From Salpingoeca rosetta (lineage: Eukaryota > Protista > Choanoflagellata): a DNA stretch of 64,000 bases. Below the pieces are notes generated by a model. The model had not been told where the DNA came from and searched no databases. It saw only the letters and a list, made by a program, of their open reading frames with translations. Location of the stretch: NCBI GenBank assembly GCA_033442325.1, contig JAWQFM010000008.1, positions 803,194-867,193 of the forward strand. Direction: 5' to 3'. Shown one piece after another: positions 8,136 to 35,966 of this stretch. A program made the position numbers and the translations under genes. The number at the start of each line of letters is the position of its first letter. Within the stretch, counting starts at the first letter, position 1.

Positions 8136-9019
8136 CTGCAGTCGGCCTTGAATTGTTCAAAACTGTCAAGGAAAGTTCACAAGGTTCGGATCTCCTTTGT
8201 TTGGTGCTCAAGGTGTTCTGTCCTTCTTCACACCACACACACGCACACGCACACATACACACACACACGCACACGCACACGCACACCGCACACGCACACA
8301 CACATGAGGACGCCTTGCACCCGTGACAGGCAAGCAAAGAAGCAAGCAAGAAGACCTTCAGTGTTCGTCATCATGCTGTTGTTCTTCTGTTCCGAACCAA
8401 CAAAGGGACAACACTGCCACCAACGCATAAGCGGGCACGCATGCATGCATGCAAGGCAAAGGGCCAAAGCGCCAAGGTCACCCGCGCCATGAACAGCTAG
8501 CCAGAACGACCGACAATGACACCGCGGAGAAGGTGGTCCATTGTCATTTACGCCAGCCAGCAGCAGATCAGAACATCTGACCAAGGGACATAGCACACAG
8601 CTACCACAACAACAACAACGGCTGCAGCCACTCGTCGTTGCAAGCACGCACACAGCACACCAACAATCGTTGCAAACACGCGTCTCCCTTGCACACTTGC
8701 ACAGCTGTCCAATCAGTGAGGTGAGACCCTCCAAGGCAACGTCACTGGCGCAGTCTTGTCAACAAACAAACAACCGACGACAACCTCAACAGCACCTCGA
8801 CACCTGTGTTGTGGACACCTTCTACAGACCGCTATAGCCTCGTCTCTTCTCATTCTCCCCTAAGCCACACACACACACACACACATACAGACACACACAC
8901 ACACGCACACATACAGACACACAGACACACACACACTCACATCAACGACCTTCGGAGCCTGAAGTCCTTGCCCTTCCCGAGTGTAGCACAGCGACAAGCA
9001 ACGCGCTCTCGAGGGCAGC

Positions 9020-10468
9020 ATGTCGACATCCCTTCGTCCACGCCCACGCCAAGCTCGCAGGAGCAGCGTCCACTCCAGCAGCAGCACACCAGCCAAGCAC
9101 ATCTTCGCCCCTTCCTTCATGGGCAGCATGACGTCCACCAAGGACTACGAGCGCGTCTTCGAGGCTGCACGCACCGGCAAATGCCACGTGATTCGCCAGC
9201 GCTCCTCAGATTGGGTGCGCACACATGGGCTCATTGAAGGCATGGGCTTTGTCTTTGACACCAAGGTCATCAAGCGCTGGACAGACGGCATCACATGGTG
9301 CGTTGATGCGCCTTTGTGTGCTTGTATGCGCGTGTGCGTGCGTGTGCTCGTGTGTGCGTGTGTGCGTGTGTGCGTGTGCGTGTGTGCGTGTGTGCGTGTG
9401 CCATCTCTTGCGCCTTGTGTGCCCTTGCGCCCTTGCATACCGTGCATGCATGCACGCAAACTCATCCCTTGCTTCTCCTCTTCCCCCTCCCCAACCGACA
9501 CGCCAGGTCCGATTCCATTCACCCGCATGGCGGAAATGTCATGATCTACCGTGAGCTCACGCGCCAGGCCACGCGGTCAAAACGCCTCAGTGAAGTGAAG
9601 GATGGCCTGCGCAAGAAAACGCTCAAGGACCCAAAGTCCACGCTCAAGGTCGTCTATTACTACAGAGAAAGGTGTGTGCGTGTGCGTGTGCTTGAGTGCT
9701 TGTGTATGGGGTGTGCGTGCGTGTGCTTGTGCTTGTGTATGGGTGTGTGTGTGTGCTTTTGTGCTTGTGCTTGTGTATGTGTGTGTGTGTGCGCTTTTGT
9801 GCTTGTGCGATGTGTTAGTACTTGTGCTTGCCTGTGCTTGTGTCTGTATCTGTGGTTGTTGCTCATACCCCACCGCCTCGCAACGCCCGTCCCCACAGAT
9901 CTGCAGATAAATACGGGACATTGACAATGTTCAACCCTGGAACAATGTACTCAGGCCACGACCAGAGCGAAATCGACAGTGAGTTGATCTGCCCACGCAT
10001 ACACGTGTACTCATGCCCTTGTGCTCATGAGTTGTGCGGAGTGTGCACGTGCTCTCCAAGATGCGAGGCAGGATGATGCTGTGCCATATCAGCATGCTCG
10101 TGGCTCAATCACTGACTTGTTTTCGTGCCATACTTGCTCTCCTCCAGGTGCCTTCTTTCTGCTCGGCCTGCGGGACCTTCGCGTTTACTGCCTCCCCAAT
10201 GGCAAGACACACAAGGAGTGGGCAAACTCCACAAGCCGCCCGGCGTCAGCGTCGCCCTCACCATCGGACACATCCGACGCCGCATCGGAGCCAGAGGTGC
10301 TCGTCGCCACCCCCAGTGCACATGTCCCGCGCGTGCGGGCAGCCGCGCCCAAGGCAGTGCGGCGACGCAGCAGTGGCGGACGCATGCTGCGTCCTACTGC
10401 CAAGCTGGCCAGGTCCTCGTCACAGCAGCTCTTTGGCCGCCCAGTATCGCCAGTCATGCCACCCATGC

Positions 10469-10511
<43 letters not shown>

Positions 10512-10947
10512 TGTGGTGCGGCCTCTACTCGATGGCAACGACATTCGCCCGCACAGCTCGGCATCAGACGCGGAGCCGGTTGCGCTTGTGGAGGAGGATG
10601 TGCAGCACATGCTCAGCAGACACGCTGGCAGCGACTCCCCTCACCCTGACGAAGAACGGTTGTACAGCAGTGACCAGCAACACATGCAGCAAATGCATTG
10701 GCAACAGTGTCCGCCGCCTCGTCAAATGATGACTTCCCCAACACCATCCTCGTCTTCGTCATCGCTTTCTTCAGCTGCCTCCTCATCCACCTCTTCGCCA
10801 CAAGACATGGCCACATCCCGTACAGCAGCAGCGGCAGCGGCAGCAGCACACCTGGCTTTCACTTCGTCGTGCGCGCCGCACATGTGGCACCCGGTTCCTC
10901 ACTACCACCGCCACATGTTGCCTCGATCTGATGTGTATTGTGAGTGA
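9020..10947 (+). CDS. WOPR (Gti1/Pac2; Wor1/Mit1/Ryp1-family) DNA-binding transcription factor with a Ser/Gln-rich C-terminus
   Basis: Exons 9020-9297, 9507-9671, 9899-9978 and 10148-10947 join in frame at GT-AG sites. WOPRa: PSFMGSMTSTKDYERVFEAARTG..GFVFDTKVIKRWTDGITW|SDSIHPHGGNVMIYREL. WOPRb: DGLRKKTLKDPKSTLKVVYYYRE. Poly-Q at ~10468-10510. Confidence 0.88.
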
Positions 10948-11986
10948 TGTGCTTGCTGTGGTGTGGCTCTATTCTTACCTGTCTTCACTCCCCTGTTGGT
11001 TCACCTCCCCCGCCCCCTTTGTCCTCCTGTCGATTCGACGCGTGTACAACTCGCTCATCCACAAGGACCTCCCTCTGTTTGTTTCGTTCAATGAGATGTA
11101 CTTGTGCCGAACAGCATGTGCTGGTTGCATGCTCCCTTCGATCCGTTGACTACCGCCTTCAAAGAACACTCCTCCTCTCGTCTAATGTGTGCCCCACCTC
11201 CGCCACAATTGTCCGTGGAGCTGATCGATCTGTCAGTCTCTGTCAGAGAGGCAAGTGTCTATTCGACGCATTTGCGGCCCTTTTCCCTTTGGCATGTATT
11301 GTTTACGCCCTCGCTTGTTTCGTGGTTATGGTAGTCATGTGATGCCTAGACTTGGTCGCGTTTCGCACACGCGCATGCAGAAAGAGCCCAACGGTAGCCA
11401 CGTTGTGACTGCTGTGTTCAGATGATGATACAAATCCCAATCAACCTACGACAATGATATGAGACACACGGTCAGGATGCCAGATAGAAGTCAATGGCAG
11501 AACGAAATTGGCAGATACAAGTAGTGGGGAAAGCGATTCTAAGACGAGGCGATAATGGACAAAGTGAGATGAGTGGCACGCCAGCGTTGCAGACACGAGA
11601 CTCACATCGGTTACACCAACGTGCGCAAAACAACGCGCACGAAGCATGGAAGCAAAGCACAACACACCATGACAGTTATGACAATCGCATCAGTGAGCAA
11701 TAAGGTGACATAGAACAAAGAACAAAATCCTTCACTTCGTTCCAGGGTCAAGAAGACAAGCAGACAAAGGACATGTCACAGCCCTGCCTTTTCGCGATGG
11801 GGCTGATACGAAAATAGACGTACACAAACAGACATAGGTAGACGCAGACACACACTTGCACACACTTGCACACACACACACACTTGCAGACAGACAGACG
11901 GACAGTCAGAGAGACAGGCGGACAGACAGACAGGCAGACAGACACAGACACAGACATACACACACACAGAGATACATGCGCACTGG

Positions 11987-21993: not shown

Positions 21994-29908
<7,915 letters not shown>

Positions 29909-29923
<15 letters not shown>

Positions 29924-31316
29924 TGTTGTGGTGAGTGAGAGGTGTGTTGTTGTTGTGGGTTGTTGTGGCCATATGTGACTACATTTCATGGTGTTCAGAG
30001 CGACATGTCAACTTCGGAGGGTAGTGGTGGGCAGCGTGTTGCCAGCACGACCGCCATGGGTAGTGGTGGCAGCAGCAGCAAAGCCGTGTCGTTTGCGACG
30101 GCGCGCGGGATTGATGCCATGCAGTTTGCCGAGTCGCGCATCCAAGAGATCAAGGGCCTCCTCTCAACCCTCTCTGGCCCAGATCGCGTCCGCCGCGTGG
30201 TGCGTATGATTGAAAGCGTGAGTGTGAGTGTGAGTGTGAGTGTGAGCGAATGTGTGAATGTGTGAGTGTGTGAGTGAGTGTGAGTGTGAGTGTGCGTGTG
30301 AGTGTGAGTGTGAGTGTGAGTGTGAGTGTGCGTGTGAGTGTGAGCGAATGTGTGAATGTGTGAATGTGTGAGTGTGTGAGTGAGTGTGAATGTGTGCGTG
30401 TGTGAATACAACTTGCTGTGTGGGTATCAATCCTGTGGGAATGCGCTGCACATTTGGCGTCACCTTCGATCCTCACTCTGCTTGGACAGCATCAAACGAT
30501 GCCGAGGCATATGCGCCGAAGGGCAACCAGCCACAACGTCAAGCGGCTGCCCATTCGTCTTCGCCAAGCAGCAATTAGAGTGAGTGACAATGCGTGGGAG
30601 TGCCATCGGATTGTCGAACGCGAACAACGGCAGGCATTGTTGTGGTGAGTGAGAGGTGTGTTGTTGTTGTGGGTTGTTGTGGCCATATGTGACTACATTT
30701 CATGGTGTTCAGAGCGACATGTCAACTTCGGAGGGTAGTGGTGGGCAGCGTGTTGCCAGCACGACCGCCATGGGTAGTGGTGGCAGCAGCAGCAAAGCCG
30801 TGTCGTTTGCGACGGCGCGCGGGATTGATGCCATGCAGTTTGCCGAGTCGCGCATCCAAGAGATCAAGGGCCTCCTCTCAACCCTCTCTGGCCCAGATCG
30901 CGTCCGCCGCGTGGTGCGTATGATTGAAAGCGTGAGTGTGAGTGTGAGTGTGAGTGTGAGCGAATGTGTGAATGTGTGAGTGTGTGAGTGAGTGTGAGTG
31001 TGAGTGTGCGTGTGAGTGTGAGTGTGAGTGTGAGTGTGAGTGTGCGTGTGAGTGTGAGCGAATGTGTGAATGTGTGAATGTGTGAGTGTGTGAGTGAGTG
31101 TGAATGTGTGCGTGTGTGAATACAACTTGCTGTGTGGGTATCAATCCTGTGGGAATGCGCTGCACATTTGGCGTCACCTTCGATCCTCACTCTGCTTGGA
31201 CAGCATCAAACGATGCCGAGGCATATGCGCCGAAGGGCAACCAGCCACAACGTCAAGCGGCTGCCCATTCGTCTTCGCCAAGCAGCAATTAGAGTGAGTG
31301 ACAATGCGTGGGAGTG
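29909..31316. repeat. Perfect 694-bp tandem duplication (29909-30602 / 30623-31316) with a 20-nt spacer, containing the cadherin ATG and POP1 exons 1-2
   Basis: Identical ORF pairs offset by 714 nt (29942/30656, 30380/31094). Confidence 0.93.
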
Positions 31317-31773
31317 GGTGTATGTGTGTGCGTGTGTGTGCGTGTGTGTGTTCTTGTATGTGTGTGCGTGTATGTGTGTGTGTGTGCTTTTGTATTTGTG
31401 TGCGTGTGTGGCAACTGTGCGTAAGGCTGTGCGCAACGCTGCTTATGCCTGACGGCTGTGGCGTGCGCTCATGTGTGCGTTTCTTTTCCCCTTGGTTGTG
31501 GAAAAAGGAAATGGAGAGGGTGCCACCGCCAAAGCAATCTGGAACAGCTGCCAAGAAGAGCCGCGAGAAGAAACGGTCCCGCCGCAACCGTCGTCGCCCT
31601 TCAAACCTGAACCGGGAGTACGCAAAGCGGTCCGCTCACAAGGTACATGCACTTGTTTGTGTGTGTATGTGTATGTGTATGTGTGTATGTGTGTGCGCGA
31701 AATGTGTTCCTTTGAGGTGAAACAGTCCCCACTGGAATACAGTCGAGTAACGAATGAGCCTGCTTTCCCTCAC

Positions 31774-31827
<54 letters not shown>

Positions 31828-34499
31828 GCCCCTCAGACGTGGCTGCACACCCACATCTGGCACACGAAGCGGTTCAAGATGGAGGCCTTGTGGGGATGGC
31901 GCATTCCCGTGCACGCAAACGAAAAGTCTGTTCGCGCCAACTACCGCTGGGTCAAAGGCGCCCACTGCACCATGGCAGACATGTCCTATTACAGCTGCTT
32001 CCAGCTCACGGGCGCCCGCAGCGCTGTTCGCGCCGCCCTGGGCGCCTGCCTCCCATATCCACACCGCATCTTCGACGGACGAGAGCACCACCGCCTCATC
32101 ACCCGCGTGCAGGCAGCAGGAGCAGCAGACAACACGGCCAGCACTGGCACAGCTGACGACAACAAGGCAACTGCAGGCGCACACAAGCACGGCGAGCTCA
32201 TTGGTGTCGTCTCTGTCATCGCCACCCCATGGGCCCCAGCACCACCAACCGCAGAAGCATCATCGTCGTCGTTGTCGTCGTCGTTGTCGTCGTTGTCGAG
32301 TGATTCCGAGTGCTCTGTGTGGGTTTGGGCGCATCCGTCCATTGCGGTGGACGTACACACCGCCATTACCACCGCAGCAACAGCCACATCAACAACAGCA
32401 GCAGCAACAACAGCAGCAGCAACAACAGCAGCAGCAACAACAGCAGCAGCGCAGCACGGAGCCACCACCACTCCAAGCACCAGCACCACCTCGACTGGCG
32501 GGAGGGTGAAGGTGGAGGACATGAGCGGAGAGTTGTGCCGGTTTCGCTTGGTTGGCGGTGCATCGCACGCGCTTCTTGTGCGCGCACTGCACGTTGCTGT
32601 TGATGGCGAGGAGGTGCAGGCACAGGACGACGGCAACAGCACTGATAATGGTGACGGTGATGATGGAGACAGGGGAGTTGTGAAAGACAAAGACGACACG
32701 GGAGAAGGTATCGTGGAAGATGGCGGTGGTGGTGGTGAGTGTGTCCATGATGGCAATGATGACGATCATGATAACGACGATGATACTGCTGGTGGTGGTG
32801 GTGGTGGTTCTGAAGGTGTGCGGCAGATGAACACCTCACTGGATGATGGCAGGGCCGATGTTGCTGGTGTTGATGCTGGTACACTGCGCACCCGCAGCGA
32901 TACAGCGGTGTGGCAATCCCTGCGTGGCATGCGCGACCCGAGCCAGCTGTCGGCGGGCGCTGCGCTGTGTCTGACCGTGTGGGACCCGCGTCTTCGCTCC
33001 CCGTCATCCATCCACCCGCCAGACCAGCACGCCGTTCACACACAGGACACCGATGGTGACACGCAGGTTGGTTGGGTTGTGTTGGGGGCGGGAGAGGGGG
33101 AGGGACCAATGCCCATGGTCTATAGTATGTCGTGTCTGTATGTGCGTGTATGTGTACGCATGTATGTATGTGCGTGTGTTGTATGTCGTGCGACTTCGTG
33201 TGGTTGTGAGTGAGTGAGTGAGTGAGTGTGTGAGTGTGTGAGTGTAATCATGTGTTGCGTGTGATTGCACATGTGACCTGTTTGCACTGTTGCAAGCGTT
33301 CCATTCACAGCTCATGATGTCATCAACACTCCCAACCCACCACCCCCACCACCAACACCGCCGCCCACCAACACGAGCAGGCATGCCTGTTAGAGTGGAT
33401 CACAACATCCACGGCCTCTCCGCTGTGGTCCCCCACCGCCCGCGCAGCTATCAACACATCCAAGCTCCCGCAGAAGATGCTCGACAGGCGCCGCAGCCGC
33501 GTTGTTGGCCGCGTTGGGGGCGACCTCCCACCCACTACGAAGGACTCGCTCCTCCCACTCCTCCTCATCCAGCGACCAGGCAGCACAGCCTCAAGGTGCG
33601 CGTCGACATGTGTGTGTTTATGTGTGTGTTGATGTGTGTGTGTTGATATGTGTGTTGATGTGTGTGGGTGTGGTTTTGTGTCAGCATGCGTTGAACATGT
33701 GTACGTGTCCAGACGTTGCGCCATGGCTGCTCTGTCTATGTGCACTGTTCATCGACTCCATCACCCTCATCCTCTTATTCCCCTCGTGTGCACGTGTGCT
33801 TTGTTTAGGCGCGCGTCCGTGTTTGCGGGCCCCGGGAGCGGGTATGCGTGCGGATGGGACGTGGTGCTGCCGTCGGCGTGGGCGCGGGAGGTGTGGCACT
33901 GCCTCGTCCACGCCGGCGCAAAGACGTGCGGCCTCCGTGATGTCAGACAGCACGCAACAGAGCAGGTGTGCATGCCAGGGTTAGAGTGAGGGAATGAGTC
34001 AGTATGAATGCAAGTGAGTTTGGAAAGTGTGGGTGGCTTTGAGGAAGCGGGTGAATGTGTGTGTGTGCATGAGTGTGTGTGCGTGTGTACATGTTGTTGT
34101 TAACACTGTACACGAGTGCGCAAACATTTGGCCATGCACCAACGCTCATGTGTGTGCGCAATCTGGTGCGCTGTTGTGGGTGCTTACACGTTCGGGCCAA
34201 CACTGCGTTGAATCAGGGCATGCTCGGGTTTCCGTTTGACTTTGTTGGCACGCGTGCACAGCACTTGTGGCGTGCCCACACCAGCACCCAGGACCTGAGC
34301 AGGTGCGAGTCTGCCGGTTGTGTCACCGTCCAACATCTTCGTACCCCCCTTGCACGCATCTTCCAAACACAATCCACGCGCGCACGCGCACCCCTGCCAT
34401 GTTAATTCCCGTCACACGCATCACTCCTCTCTTCCCCACACTGCAACGACGATCACTCACACCCATCATCATCACCACCACCACCACCATCATCATCAC

Positions 34500-34942: not shown

Positions 34943-35568
34943 TGTGTGGGTGTGGGTGTGGGTGTGTAGGTGTGGGTGTGGGTGTTGTGGTTTCCCGCTC
35001 GCTCCCGCGTCTCTGTCTGCTTGATCATGTGAGGTGGTGATATGGTGCATCTTCGGGTCCGGCCTTCGCTGCGTCTGCTCTTTTGCATTCGGCTTCGCCC
35101 TGACGATGGTGCGTGCACTTGACACTGCAGGGCGTGTTCGACTTTGAATTTCGCGGCGTTGCCGGCGGGCTGACGAGCGGAGGATTCTGCCACTCGCGCG
35201 CACGTGAATACGGGCTTGGCTTCGTCACGGTGGCGGCCCTTGGCGAGTGCATACGCGTGACGCAGCAGCTCAGGGATACGCTTGGCGCACCGCCGGGCGT
35301 GCCATCACAGCAAACACGGCGACGCAAGAGGCAACAACAACAACAGCAGCAGCCGCGTGGCGATGGTGCAAGTGGGGTGGTTGCTGCGACTGGTACTGGC
35401 ACACCACACCCTGAGAAGAGACAAGCGGGATGGCGTGGCAAGAAGCGCGCACTGCTGCAGCATCCACGGTTTGACAACACGTTCTTGGCGCTCTCCAAGC
35501 ATGCGGACACGCGCTCGTTTCGCGTTGTTCATCTTCGTGTCGTCGACACGCACTGGCTCGAGAGCTGA
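30719..35568 (+). CDS. POP1: RNase P/MRP subunit POP1
   Basis: [95 protein letters not shown] 5' partial duplicate starts at 30005. Confidence 0.92.
34464..34695. repeat. Compound trinucleotide microsatellite (CAT)n(CAC)n(CAA)n within POP1
   Basis: Direct inspection. Confidence 0.95.
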
Positions 35569-35690
35569 TGCACCCGCGCGCGTGTGTGTGTGTGTGTGTG
35601 TGCGCTCGTTTCGCGTTGTTCATCTTCGTGTCGTCGACACGCACTGGCTCGAGAGCTGATGCACCCGCGCGCGTGTGTGTGTGTGTGTGT
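35511..35690. repeat. 91-bp tandem duplication of the POP1 stop-codon region
   Basis: gcgctcgtttcgcg...gagagctgatgcacccgcgcgc at 35511 and again at 35602. Confidence 0.9.
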
Positions 35691-35771: not shown

Positions 35772-35966
35772 GCAAGTAAAGACACCACAAGCAACTGGGA
35801 ATCACACGTCGCTACGCATCAAGCTTTGCCCGTTTTCGCGCCATGCTGCACACGATCACGCGGATATGCAAGTAAAGACACCACAAGCAACTGGGAATCA
35901 CACGTCGCTACGCATCAAGCTTTGCCCGTTTTCGCGCCATGCTGCACACGATCACGCGGATATGCA
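35772..35966. repeat. 96-bp tandem duplication
   Basis: gcaagtaaagacaccac...cggatatgca at 35772 and again at 35868. Confidence 0.9.

Follow-up and report, generated by a model that had tools for sequence, protein, structure and literature searches.

We analysed a 64-kb window of the genome of the choanoflagellate Salpingoeca rosetta (64,000 nucleotides, positions 803194–867193 of contig 8 in a 68-contig, 55.4-Mb assembly), whose plus strand carries a gene for a protein of the WOPR family (Pfam model PF09729, Gti1_Pac2), the family of Candida Wor1. The gene consists of four exons that join in frame to 1323 nt and encode 440 amino acids (aa). Its start codon, the ATG at 9020, is the first in-frame ATG past a stop, and the frame closes with TGA at 10945–10947. 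Each of the three introns runs from GT to AG with a CAG acceptor. The parts of the gene, in window coordinates, are the following.

9020–9297, plus strand: exon 1, codons 1–92 plus 2 nt; serine/arginine-rich N-terminal leader and most of WOPRa, the first half of the domain (FAPSF at residues 29–33; KRWTDG of the recognition loop at 85–90)
9298–9506, plus strand: intron 1, 209 nt, GT..AG, phase 2, splitting the Trp codon of DGITW; carries a TGTGTGCG-type repeat
9507–9671, plus strand: exon 2, end of WOPRa (WSDSIHP..GNVMIYREL, to 9564), linker of ~13 aa (9565–9603) and WOPRb, the second half (GLRKKT..KVVYYY, 9604–9666)
9672–9898, plus strand: intron 2, 227 nt, GT..AG, 74% G+T, with a 38-nt TG-rich repeat
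9899–9978, plus strand: exon 3, 80 nt; segment following WOPRb (YGTL..), kept among choanoflagellate orthologues
9979–10147, plus strand: intron 3, 169 nt, GTGAGT..CAG, unique sequence
10148–10947, plus strand: exon 4 as a whole, C-terminal module of the domain followed by a low-complexity tail
10148–10227, plus strand: start of exon 4, C-terminal domain module IDSAFFLLGL....LPNGKTHKEW, residues 173–199, present in all five choanoflagellate sequences, with a weak counterpart in fungal WOPRs
10228–10947, plus strand: remainder of exon 4, tail of ~240 aa rich in serine, alanine, proline and glutamine and probably disordered; RRRSS at 10360–10374, a run of 14 glutamines (Q14) at 10468–10509, S6, A8, and TGA at 10945–10947

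In the spliced translation, the characteristic motifs fall at residues 85–93 (KRWTDGITW, which spans intron 1), 105–110 (MIYREL), 126–131 (GLRKKT) and 141–145 (VVYYY). A profile built from the domains of four other choanoflagellate proteins aligned unbroken with residues 25–204 at 218 bits, crossing the exon boundaries that lie at codons 92/93, 147/148 and 174/175, and this alignment is the strongest support for the predicted exon model. The four in-frame spliced exons described in the earlier note, which was written from the DNA alone, thus proved exact in their coordinates, and two further statements of that note held as well: the introns resemble the rest of the window, in that the first two are built like TG/GC microsatellites and dozens of similar arrays occur across the window, which is filled with the same TG/CA-rich repeats, so that the non-coding sequence has a native look, and the tail is indeed of low complexity, with S, P, Q, A and T making up 55% of residues 205–440, including the Q14, S6 and A8 runs and the basic RRRSS patch. 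A Pfam scan of the exon pieces found no domain in the exon 4 tail, and the tails of the choanoflagellate orthologues are likewise of low complexity and not alignable. A donor-like GTGAGT at 10940–10945 overlaps the stop codon, and the last few residues of the protein are therefore uncertain.

To assess transcription, 31-mers sampled from positions 8900–11300 were compared with public sequencing runs, recording the share held by each run assembly. Fifteen small, transcriptome-sized run assemblies from four studies held 0.58–0.69 of these words; a transcript lacking precisely the three introns would give 0.71 (1676/2371 words). When the 31-mers of intron 3 were queried alone, 20 holders were found, all of them DNA-type runs or the runs X1–X3, and none of the 15 transcriptome-sized runs was among them. 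Presence of exon words together with absence of intron 3 fits spliced mRNA, short of proving the junctions; the gene is thus apparently transcribed and spliced.

Membership in the WOPR family is far above chance. Exon 1 alone (92 aa) matched PF09729 at 38.8 bits (expectation value E 1.4e-9, profile positions 1–62), clearly exceeding the curated gathering cut-off of 23.6 bits, and when it was compared with PDB sequences using phmmer, the top matches were yeast YHR177W (4m8b) and Candida Wor1 (4qtj). A profile made from choanoflagellate proteins only likewise retrieved Wor1 (E 1.6e-11, the WOPRa region aligning with Wor1 2–98) and YHR177W (E 1.4e-10) from the PDB, and nothing besides these two below E 0.01. 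The recognition-loop motif RWTDGxxW is intact within WOPRa (residues ~27–112) and includes, right behind KRW, the sequence DGITW, which conforms to the DxxxW motif that steadies the DNA-recognition loop (PMC9252788). In profile alignments, the WOPRb motif GLRKKT..KVVYYY (residues 126–145) lines up with NGLVKKTI and ISYY of Wor1. The linker between the two halves is minimal, ~13 residues here and 8–20 in the choanoflagellate orthologues. PF09729 was the sole Pfam match both for the exon pieces (E≤1) and for six relatives (E≤0.01); the CG-1 model (PF03859) was not matched. A six-frame PF09729 search of the 55.4-Mb genome recovered the WOPR locus at 42 bits and no second locus, in a search that scores the best candidates only; by this search the gene is single-copy.

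We next turned to the fold, for which AlphaFold2 models were built with a small family alignment for two orthologues, from Salpingoeca infusionum (residues 1–180) and Choanoeca perplexa (residues 1–170). Model quality is medium, the mean predicted local distance difference test score (pLDDT) being 62 and 66, respectively; core helices and strands reach 80–94 in both, with the WOPRb strands at 84–93. In a Foldseek comparison with the PDB, the first four matches were the WOPR structures 4m8b, 4qtk_A, 4qtk_B and 4qtj (E 2e-4 to 1.5e-3, probability 1.00), the next one following at E 1.5. Superposition with VIA-align gave Z-scores of 11.1, 10.9 and 9.2 (root-mean-square deviation 2.7–4.2 Å over 105–120 residues, 27–31% identity), the alignment spanning Wor1 residues 6–249 and thereby the two halves on either side of the long linker of the fungal protein. 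After the WOPR–DNA structures, the best structural match was Ssr4 at Z 4.3, a protein already grouped by fold with WOPR, CG-1 and NAC (Holm 2022, PMC9252788). According to these models, the interdigitated beta-sheet fold of the solved WOPR–DNA complexes is present in the orthologues. Pfam score, profile-to-PDB matches and modelled fold all agree with the WOPR assignment first proposed from the DNA.

Relatives were searched for exhaustively with phmmer, using the 92-aa product of exon 1 against 1.84 billion cluster representatives. Six matches were obtained at E≤1e-3. The best four are choanoflagellate, namely EukProt transcriptome proteins of S. infusionum, Hartaetosiga gracilis, H. balthica and C. 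perplexa; the fifth is a Logan protein of fungal type (P0005) and the sixth a Penicillium protein at E 8e-4. All six matched PF09729, the choanoflagellate proteins at 33.6–78.7 bits and the fungal-type ones at 105–202 bits. In blastp comparisons with the whole spliced protein, identity was 49% over 182 aa for S. infusionum, 39–40% over 185–189 aa for the two Hartaetosiga species, 38% over 182 aa for C. perplexa and 37% over 104 aa for Penicillium. Common to the five choanoflagellate proteins, and not to fungal WOPRs, are the motif SDSxHP, the linker of ~8–20 residues and a block of the form (D/I)DGAFxLLSL...LPxGxxHxEW. With five species from three or more genera carrying it, the gene is, judging by this distribution, old within craspedid choanoflagellates.

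As to the two fungal-type matches, the Penicillium WOPR locus is a single uninterrupted 1341-nt frame, so that this intronless gene offers no intron positions to compare. P0005 (125 aa, PF09729 104.7 bits; L003, 2501–2878 and 3159–3779; L004) resembles exon 1 of a WOPR gene of fungal type and was apparently ended at an intron by prokaryote-style gene calling; a retrotransposon gag/pol lies near it on L004.

The gene is a divergent WOPR member in an unexpected lineage. WOPR proteins have been called fungal-specific or fungi-specific (PMC4917244, PMC4567300, PMC13729134) and said to occur exclusively in fungi (PMC6243373), in line with the description of the family in the earlier note, and the S. 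rosetta gene contradicts this much-repeated statement. A full-text literature search returned no relevant paper joining WOPR, Gti1/Pac2 or Wor1 with choanoflagellates, and neither Gti1 nor PF09729 occurs as a string in the supplements of a 19-transcriptome study (Richter 2018). A public protein collection already tags choanoflagellate transcriptome proteins with PF09729; the gap therefore lies in literature and interpretation, not in detectability. Judged by these homologies, the WOPR family extends to the closest relatives of animals.

Given the fungal reputation of the family, which is all that speaks for it, we considered whether the gene could be an artefact, either a contig from a contaminating fungus or a reading frame that is dead or open by chance. 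Three open reading frames (ORFs) with recognisable domains elsewhere in the window bear on the identity of the contig.

22855–29298, minus strand: cadherin/EGF ORF, 2148 aa uninterrupted, Cadherin at 130.6 bits plus EGF domains, 12 kb from the WOPR gene
31471–33210, plus strand: POP1 ORF, N-terminal domain of the RNase P/MRP subunit POP1, 58.2 bits
49710–51059, plus strand: TNFR/NGFR cysteine-rich ORF, 450 aa, 46.9 bits

Cadherins are holozoan, not fungal, and the cadherin/EGF ORF, a large cadherin of choanoflagellate type on the same contig as the WOPR gene, marks this contig as holozoan. The gene lies on one of 68 contigs, its nearest relatives are choanoflagellate transcripts, and the runs that hold its sequence bear one species label throughout, across 13 studies from 2010 to 2024. 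Codon usage is native: relative synonymous codon usage correlates with that of the other long ORFs of the window at r = 0.77, and the G+C content at third codon positions (0.65) falls inside their range. The reading frame is intact, and its exon words recur in transcriptome-sized assemblies that are devoid of intron 3. An artefact of either kind is hence very improbable; in practical terms, contamination and a fungal origin of the contig can be dismissed, and the choanoflagellate host assumed from the outset is borne out, with the TNFR-type cysteine-rich ORF adding to the cadherin/EGF ORF.

Apart from these genes, the window contains a perfect 694-bp direct duplication (29909–30602 and 30623–31316, 20 bp apart) with a (GTGAGT)n array in each copy, which may have arisen by recent tandem duplication or as an artefact of the assembly. 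At 35511–35690 and 35772–35966 lie two perfect tandem repeats of two copies each, with periods of 91 and 96 nt, respectively, and 100% identity. A stretch of 100 N at 1758–1857 may be an assembly gap, and a CA-rich repeat stretch is located at 11847–11892.

How a WOPR gene came to reside in choanoflagellates can be approached from the distribution and divergence of its relatives. Inheritance from the opisthokont ancestor, followed by loss on the animal stem, is the account we favour, with little better than even confidence. The alternative is an ancient horizontal transfer from a fungus to a choanoflagellate ancestor and subsequent domestication, in which introns were gained and codon usage adapted. 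Such a transfer would explain why there are thousands of fungal members and all non-fungal matches found here are choanoflagellate, why the exhaustive search at E≤1e-3 returned no Capsaspora, ichthyosporean or animal match, and why the literature knows the family from fungi only (PMC6243373, PMC4917244). The blank for other holozoans is weak evidence, however, as it was obtained with a 92-aa query in a library so large that even the Penicillium WOPR was assigned merely E 8e-4. A word-filtered protein search returned only the known choanoflagellate proteins even at E≤10; it evidently missed fungal WOPRs too and is thus silent on other holozoans. In addition, the gene is shared by five species of at least three genera, the PF09729 scores of the orthologues (34–79 bits, with exon 1 here at 38.8) are far under those of fungal members, and lineage-specific motifs (WSDSxHP, the short linker and the extra C-terminal module) set the choanoflagellate proteins apart. 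Because of these low Pfam scores and lineage-specific motifs, a recent donor from among crown fungi is unlikely, and we regard transfer in general as possible but doubtful. There is a small chance that descent and transfer are not to be told apart at all.

With regard to function, the protein is most likely a sequence-specific nuclear transcription factor, as suggested by the combination of WOPR fold, recognition loop and Q-rich tail. Its layout comprises WOPRa (residues ~27–112), a very short linker, a probable WOPRb (~126–146) and a choanoflagellate extension (~150–200). By homology with Wor1 and YHR177W, WOPRa and WOPRb would interdigitate into one beta-sheet, which would offer the RWTDGxxW loop to DNA such that the loop arginine could enter the minor groove, a detail drawn indirectly from PMC4567300, PMC13729134 and PMC9252788. 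The ~240-residue S/A/P/Q-rich tail with its Q14 run may act as an activation or interaction region that recruits the transcription machinery. Residues 85–88 (KRWT) form a site resembling those of protein kinase A (PKA). The equivalent threonine of Wor1 is a PKA target.

Alternatively, the domain could derive from a WOPR ancestor and have lost sequence-specific DNA binding in favour of a new function, as has been suggested for the structurally related N-terminal domain of Ssr4, a chromatin-remodeller subunit. The region following the loop is divergent (SDSxHP for SPSR) and modelled at low confidence, some proteins with this fold are not believed to be DNA-binding (Holm 2022, PMC9252788), and Ssr4 itself was the next structural match. 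Nevertheless, the proteins of S. rosetta, S. infusionum and Choanoeca retain the GLxKKT strand as well as the RWTDGxxW loop and its arginine, similarity to the DNA-bound WOPR structures (Z 9–11) is well above that to Ssr4 (Z 4.3), and transcription factors typically have tails rich in Q, S and P, as seen here. Loss of DNA binding is accordingly an improbable explanation, and we retain a sequence-specific transcription factor as the most likely function.

Several observations weigh against this assignment or limit how far it reaches. On the choanoflagellate proteins, the PF09729 alignment extends only over profile positions 1 to ~100 of 168, and WOPRb is therefore backed by its short motif and by structure, not by a score from the hidden Markov model. 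WOPRb, which measures ~50 aa in fungal WOPRs (PMC4567300), is the weaker part of the WOPR case, being scored separately neither by Pfam nor by the choanoflagellate profile. For the protein encoded in the window, the Pfam evidence is that of exon 1, and the fold evidence is that of orthologues at 38–49% identity, in both of whose models pLDDT drops below 50 for the WSDS..MIYRE hairpin and for the C-terminal module. Where fungal WOPRs have SPSR, the choanoflagellate proteins have SDSxHP. Both Hartaetosiga proteins read RWTDN, and ahead of the WVR segment they are devoid of the basic pair, which is RR in Wor1 and Choanoeca and QR in the protein of the window; contacts with DNA may differ as a result. 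Evidence for splicing and expression is indirect in that it comes from word shares. Finally, the fungal WOPR core motif TTAAAGTTT, allowing at most one mismatch, occurred 0 times in the 64-kb window with 2.2 occurrences expected; this count is uninformative, and so is the accompanying lack of any sign of autoregulation via this motif.

Taking all evidence together, we assign a probability of roughly 0.8 to the reading that the locus is a native, single-copy, four-exon choanoflagellate gene, apparently transcribed and spliced, which encodes a genuine but divergent WOPR protein, most likely a sequence-specific nuclear transcription factor, and which is old in craspedids. The WOPR family and the choanoflagellate host given in the earlier note stand in this reading; its 'cell-state switch' role is a conjecture by pure analogy with fungi. 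Carried to its furthest point, the analogy would make WOPR ancestral to opisthokonts, kept in a compact short-linker form in choanoflagellates, lost on the animal stem, and in S. rosetta a master switch of life-history states (thecate, swimmer, rosette, mating) that responds to nutrients or to cyclic AMP (cAMP)/PKA signalling, a chain of suppositions that we consider speculative and improbable as a whole.

WOPRs, which in fungi act as master switches controlling morphology, mating and virulence, are among the best-known 'kingdom-specific' regulators. The choanoflagellate orthologue group would imply either an opisthokont-ancestral family that was lost in animals or an old transfer of a regulator from fungi to holozoans. 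In S. rosetta, a genetically tractable species with defined cell-state transitions and a published knockout method (bioRxiv 10.1101/2024.07.13.603360), this single-copy gene would allow a direct test of whether WOPR proteins control cell identity outside fungi. With its naturally short linker, the protein also offers a compact form of the domain that could serve biochemistry.

Compared with the structurally characterised fungal members, Candida albicans Wor1 and Saccharomyces cerevisiae YHR177W/Mit1 (4qtj, 4qtk, 4m8b), the S. rosetta protein is alike in its match to PF09729, in having WOPRa and a probable WOPRb, with the RWTDGxxW loop and the GLxKKT..YY strand, and in its overall arrangement, an N-terminal domain followed by a long, low-complexity, Q-rich tail; the models of its orthologues superpose on these structures at Z 9.2–11.1 with 27–31% identity. 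It differs in sequence, with ~37% identity to a fungal member over 104 alignable residues, in the linker, which measures ~25–100 aa or more in fungi (PMC4567300), ~100 in Wor1 and ~13 here, in having SDSxHP in place of SPSR, and in the extra conserved module (D/IDGAFxLLSL...LPxGxxHxEW) past WOPRb, which is unlike Wor1 and YHR177W. Whereas most fungi possess two WOPR paralogues (PMC4917244), the choanoflagellate gene is single-copy, and its host is not a fungus. Schizosaccharomyces pombe Gti1 and Pac2, Histoplasma Ryp1, Fusarium Sge1, Ustilago Ros1 and Aspergillus OsaA belong to the same family by the Pfam model, and the KRWT site is kept in S. rosetta. These regulators govern fungal mating, dimorphism, sporulation and effector genes. 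The CG-1 domain of CAMTA proteins, Ssr4_N and NAC/NAM (WRKY/GCM1 clan CL0274; Holm 2022, PMC9252788) share the same alpha-plus-five-strand fold class, but differ in that they have no Pfam match here and, for Ssr4, in a Z-score of 4.3 as opposed to 9–11 for WOPR. The choanoflagellate protein is thus a WOPR protein proper, not one of the CG-1 type of animals and plants.

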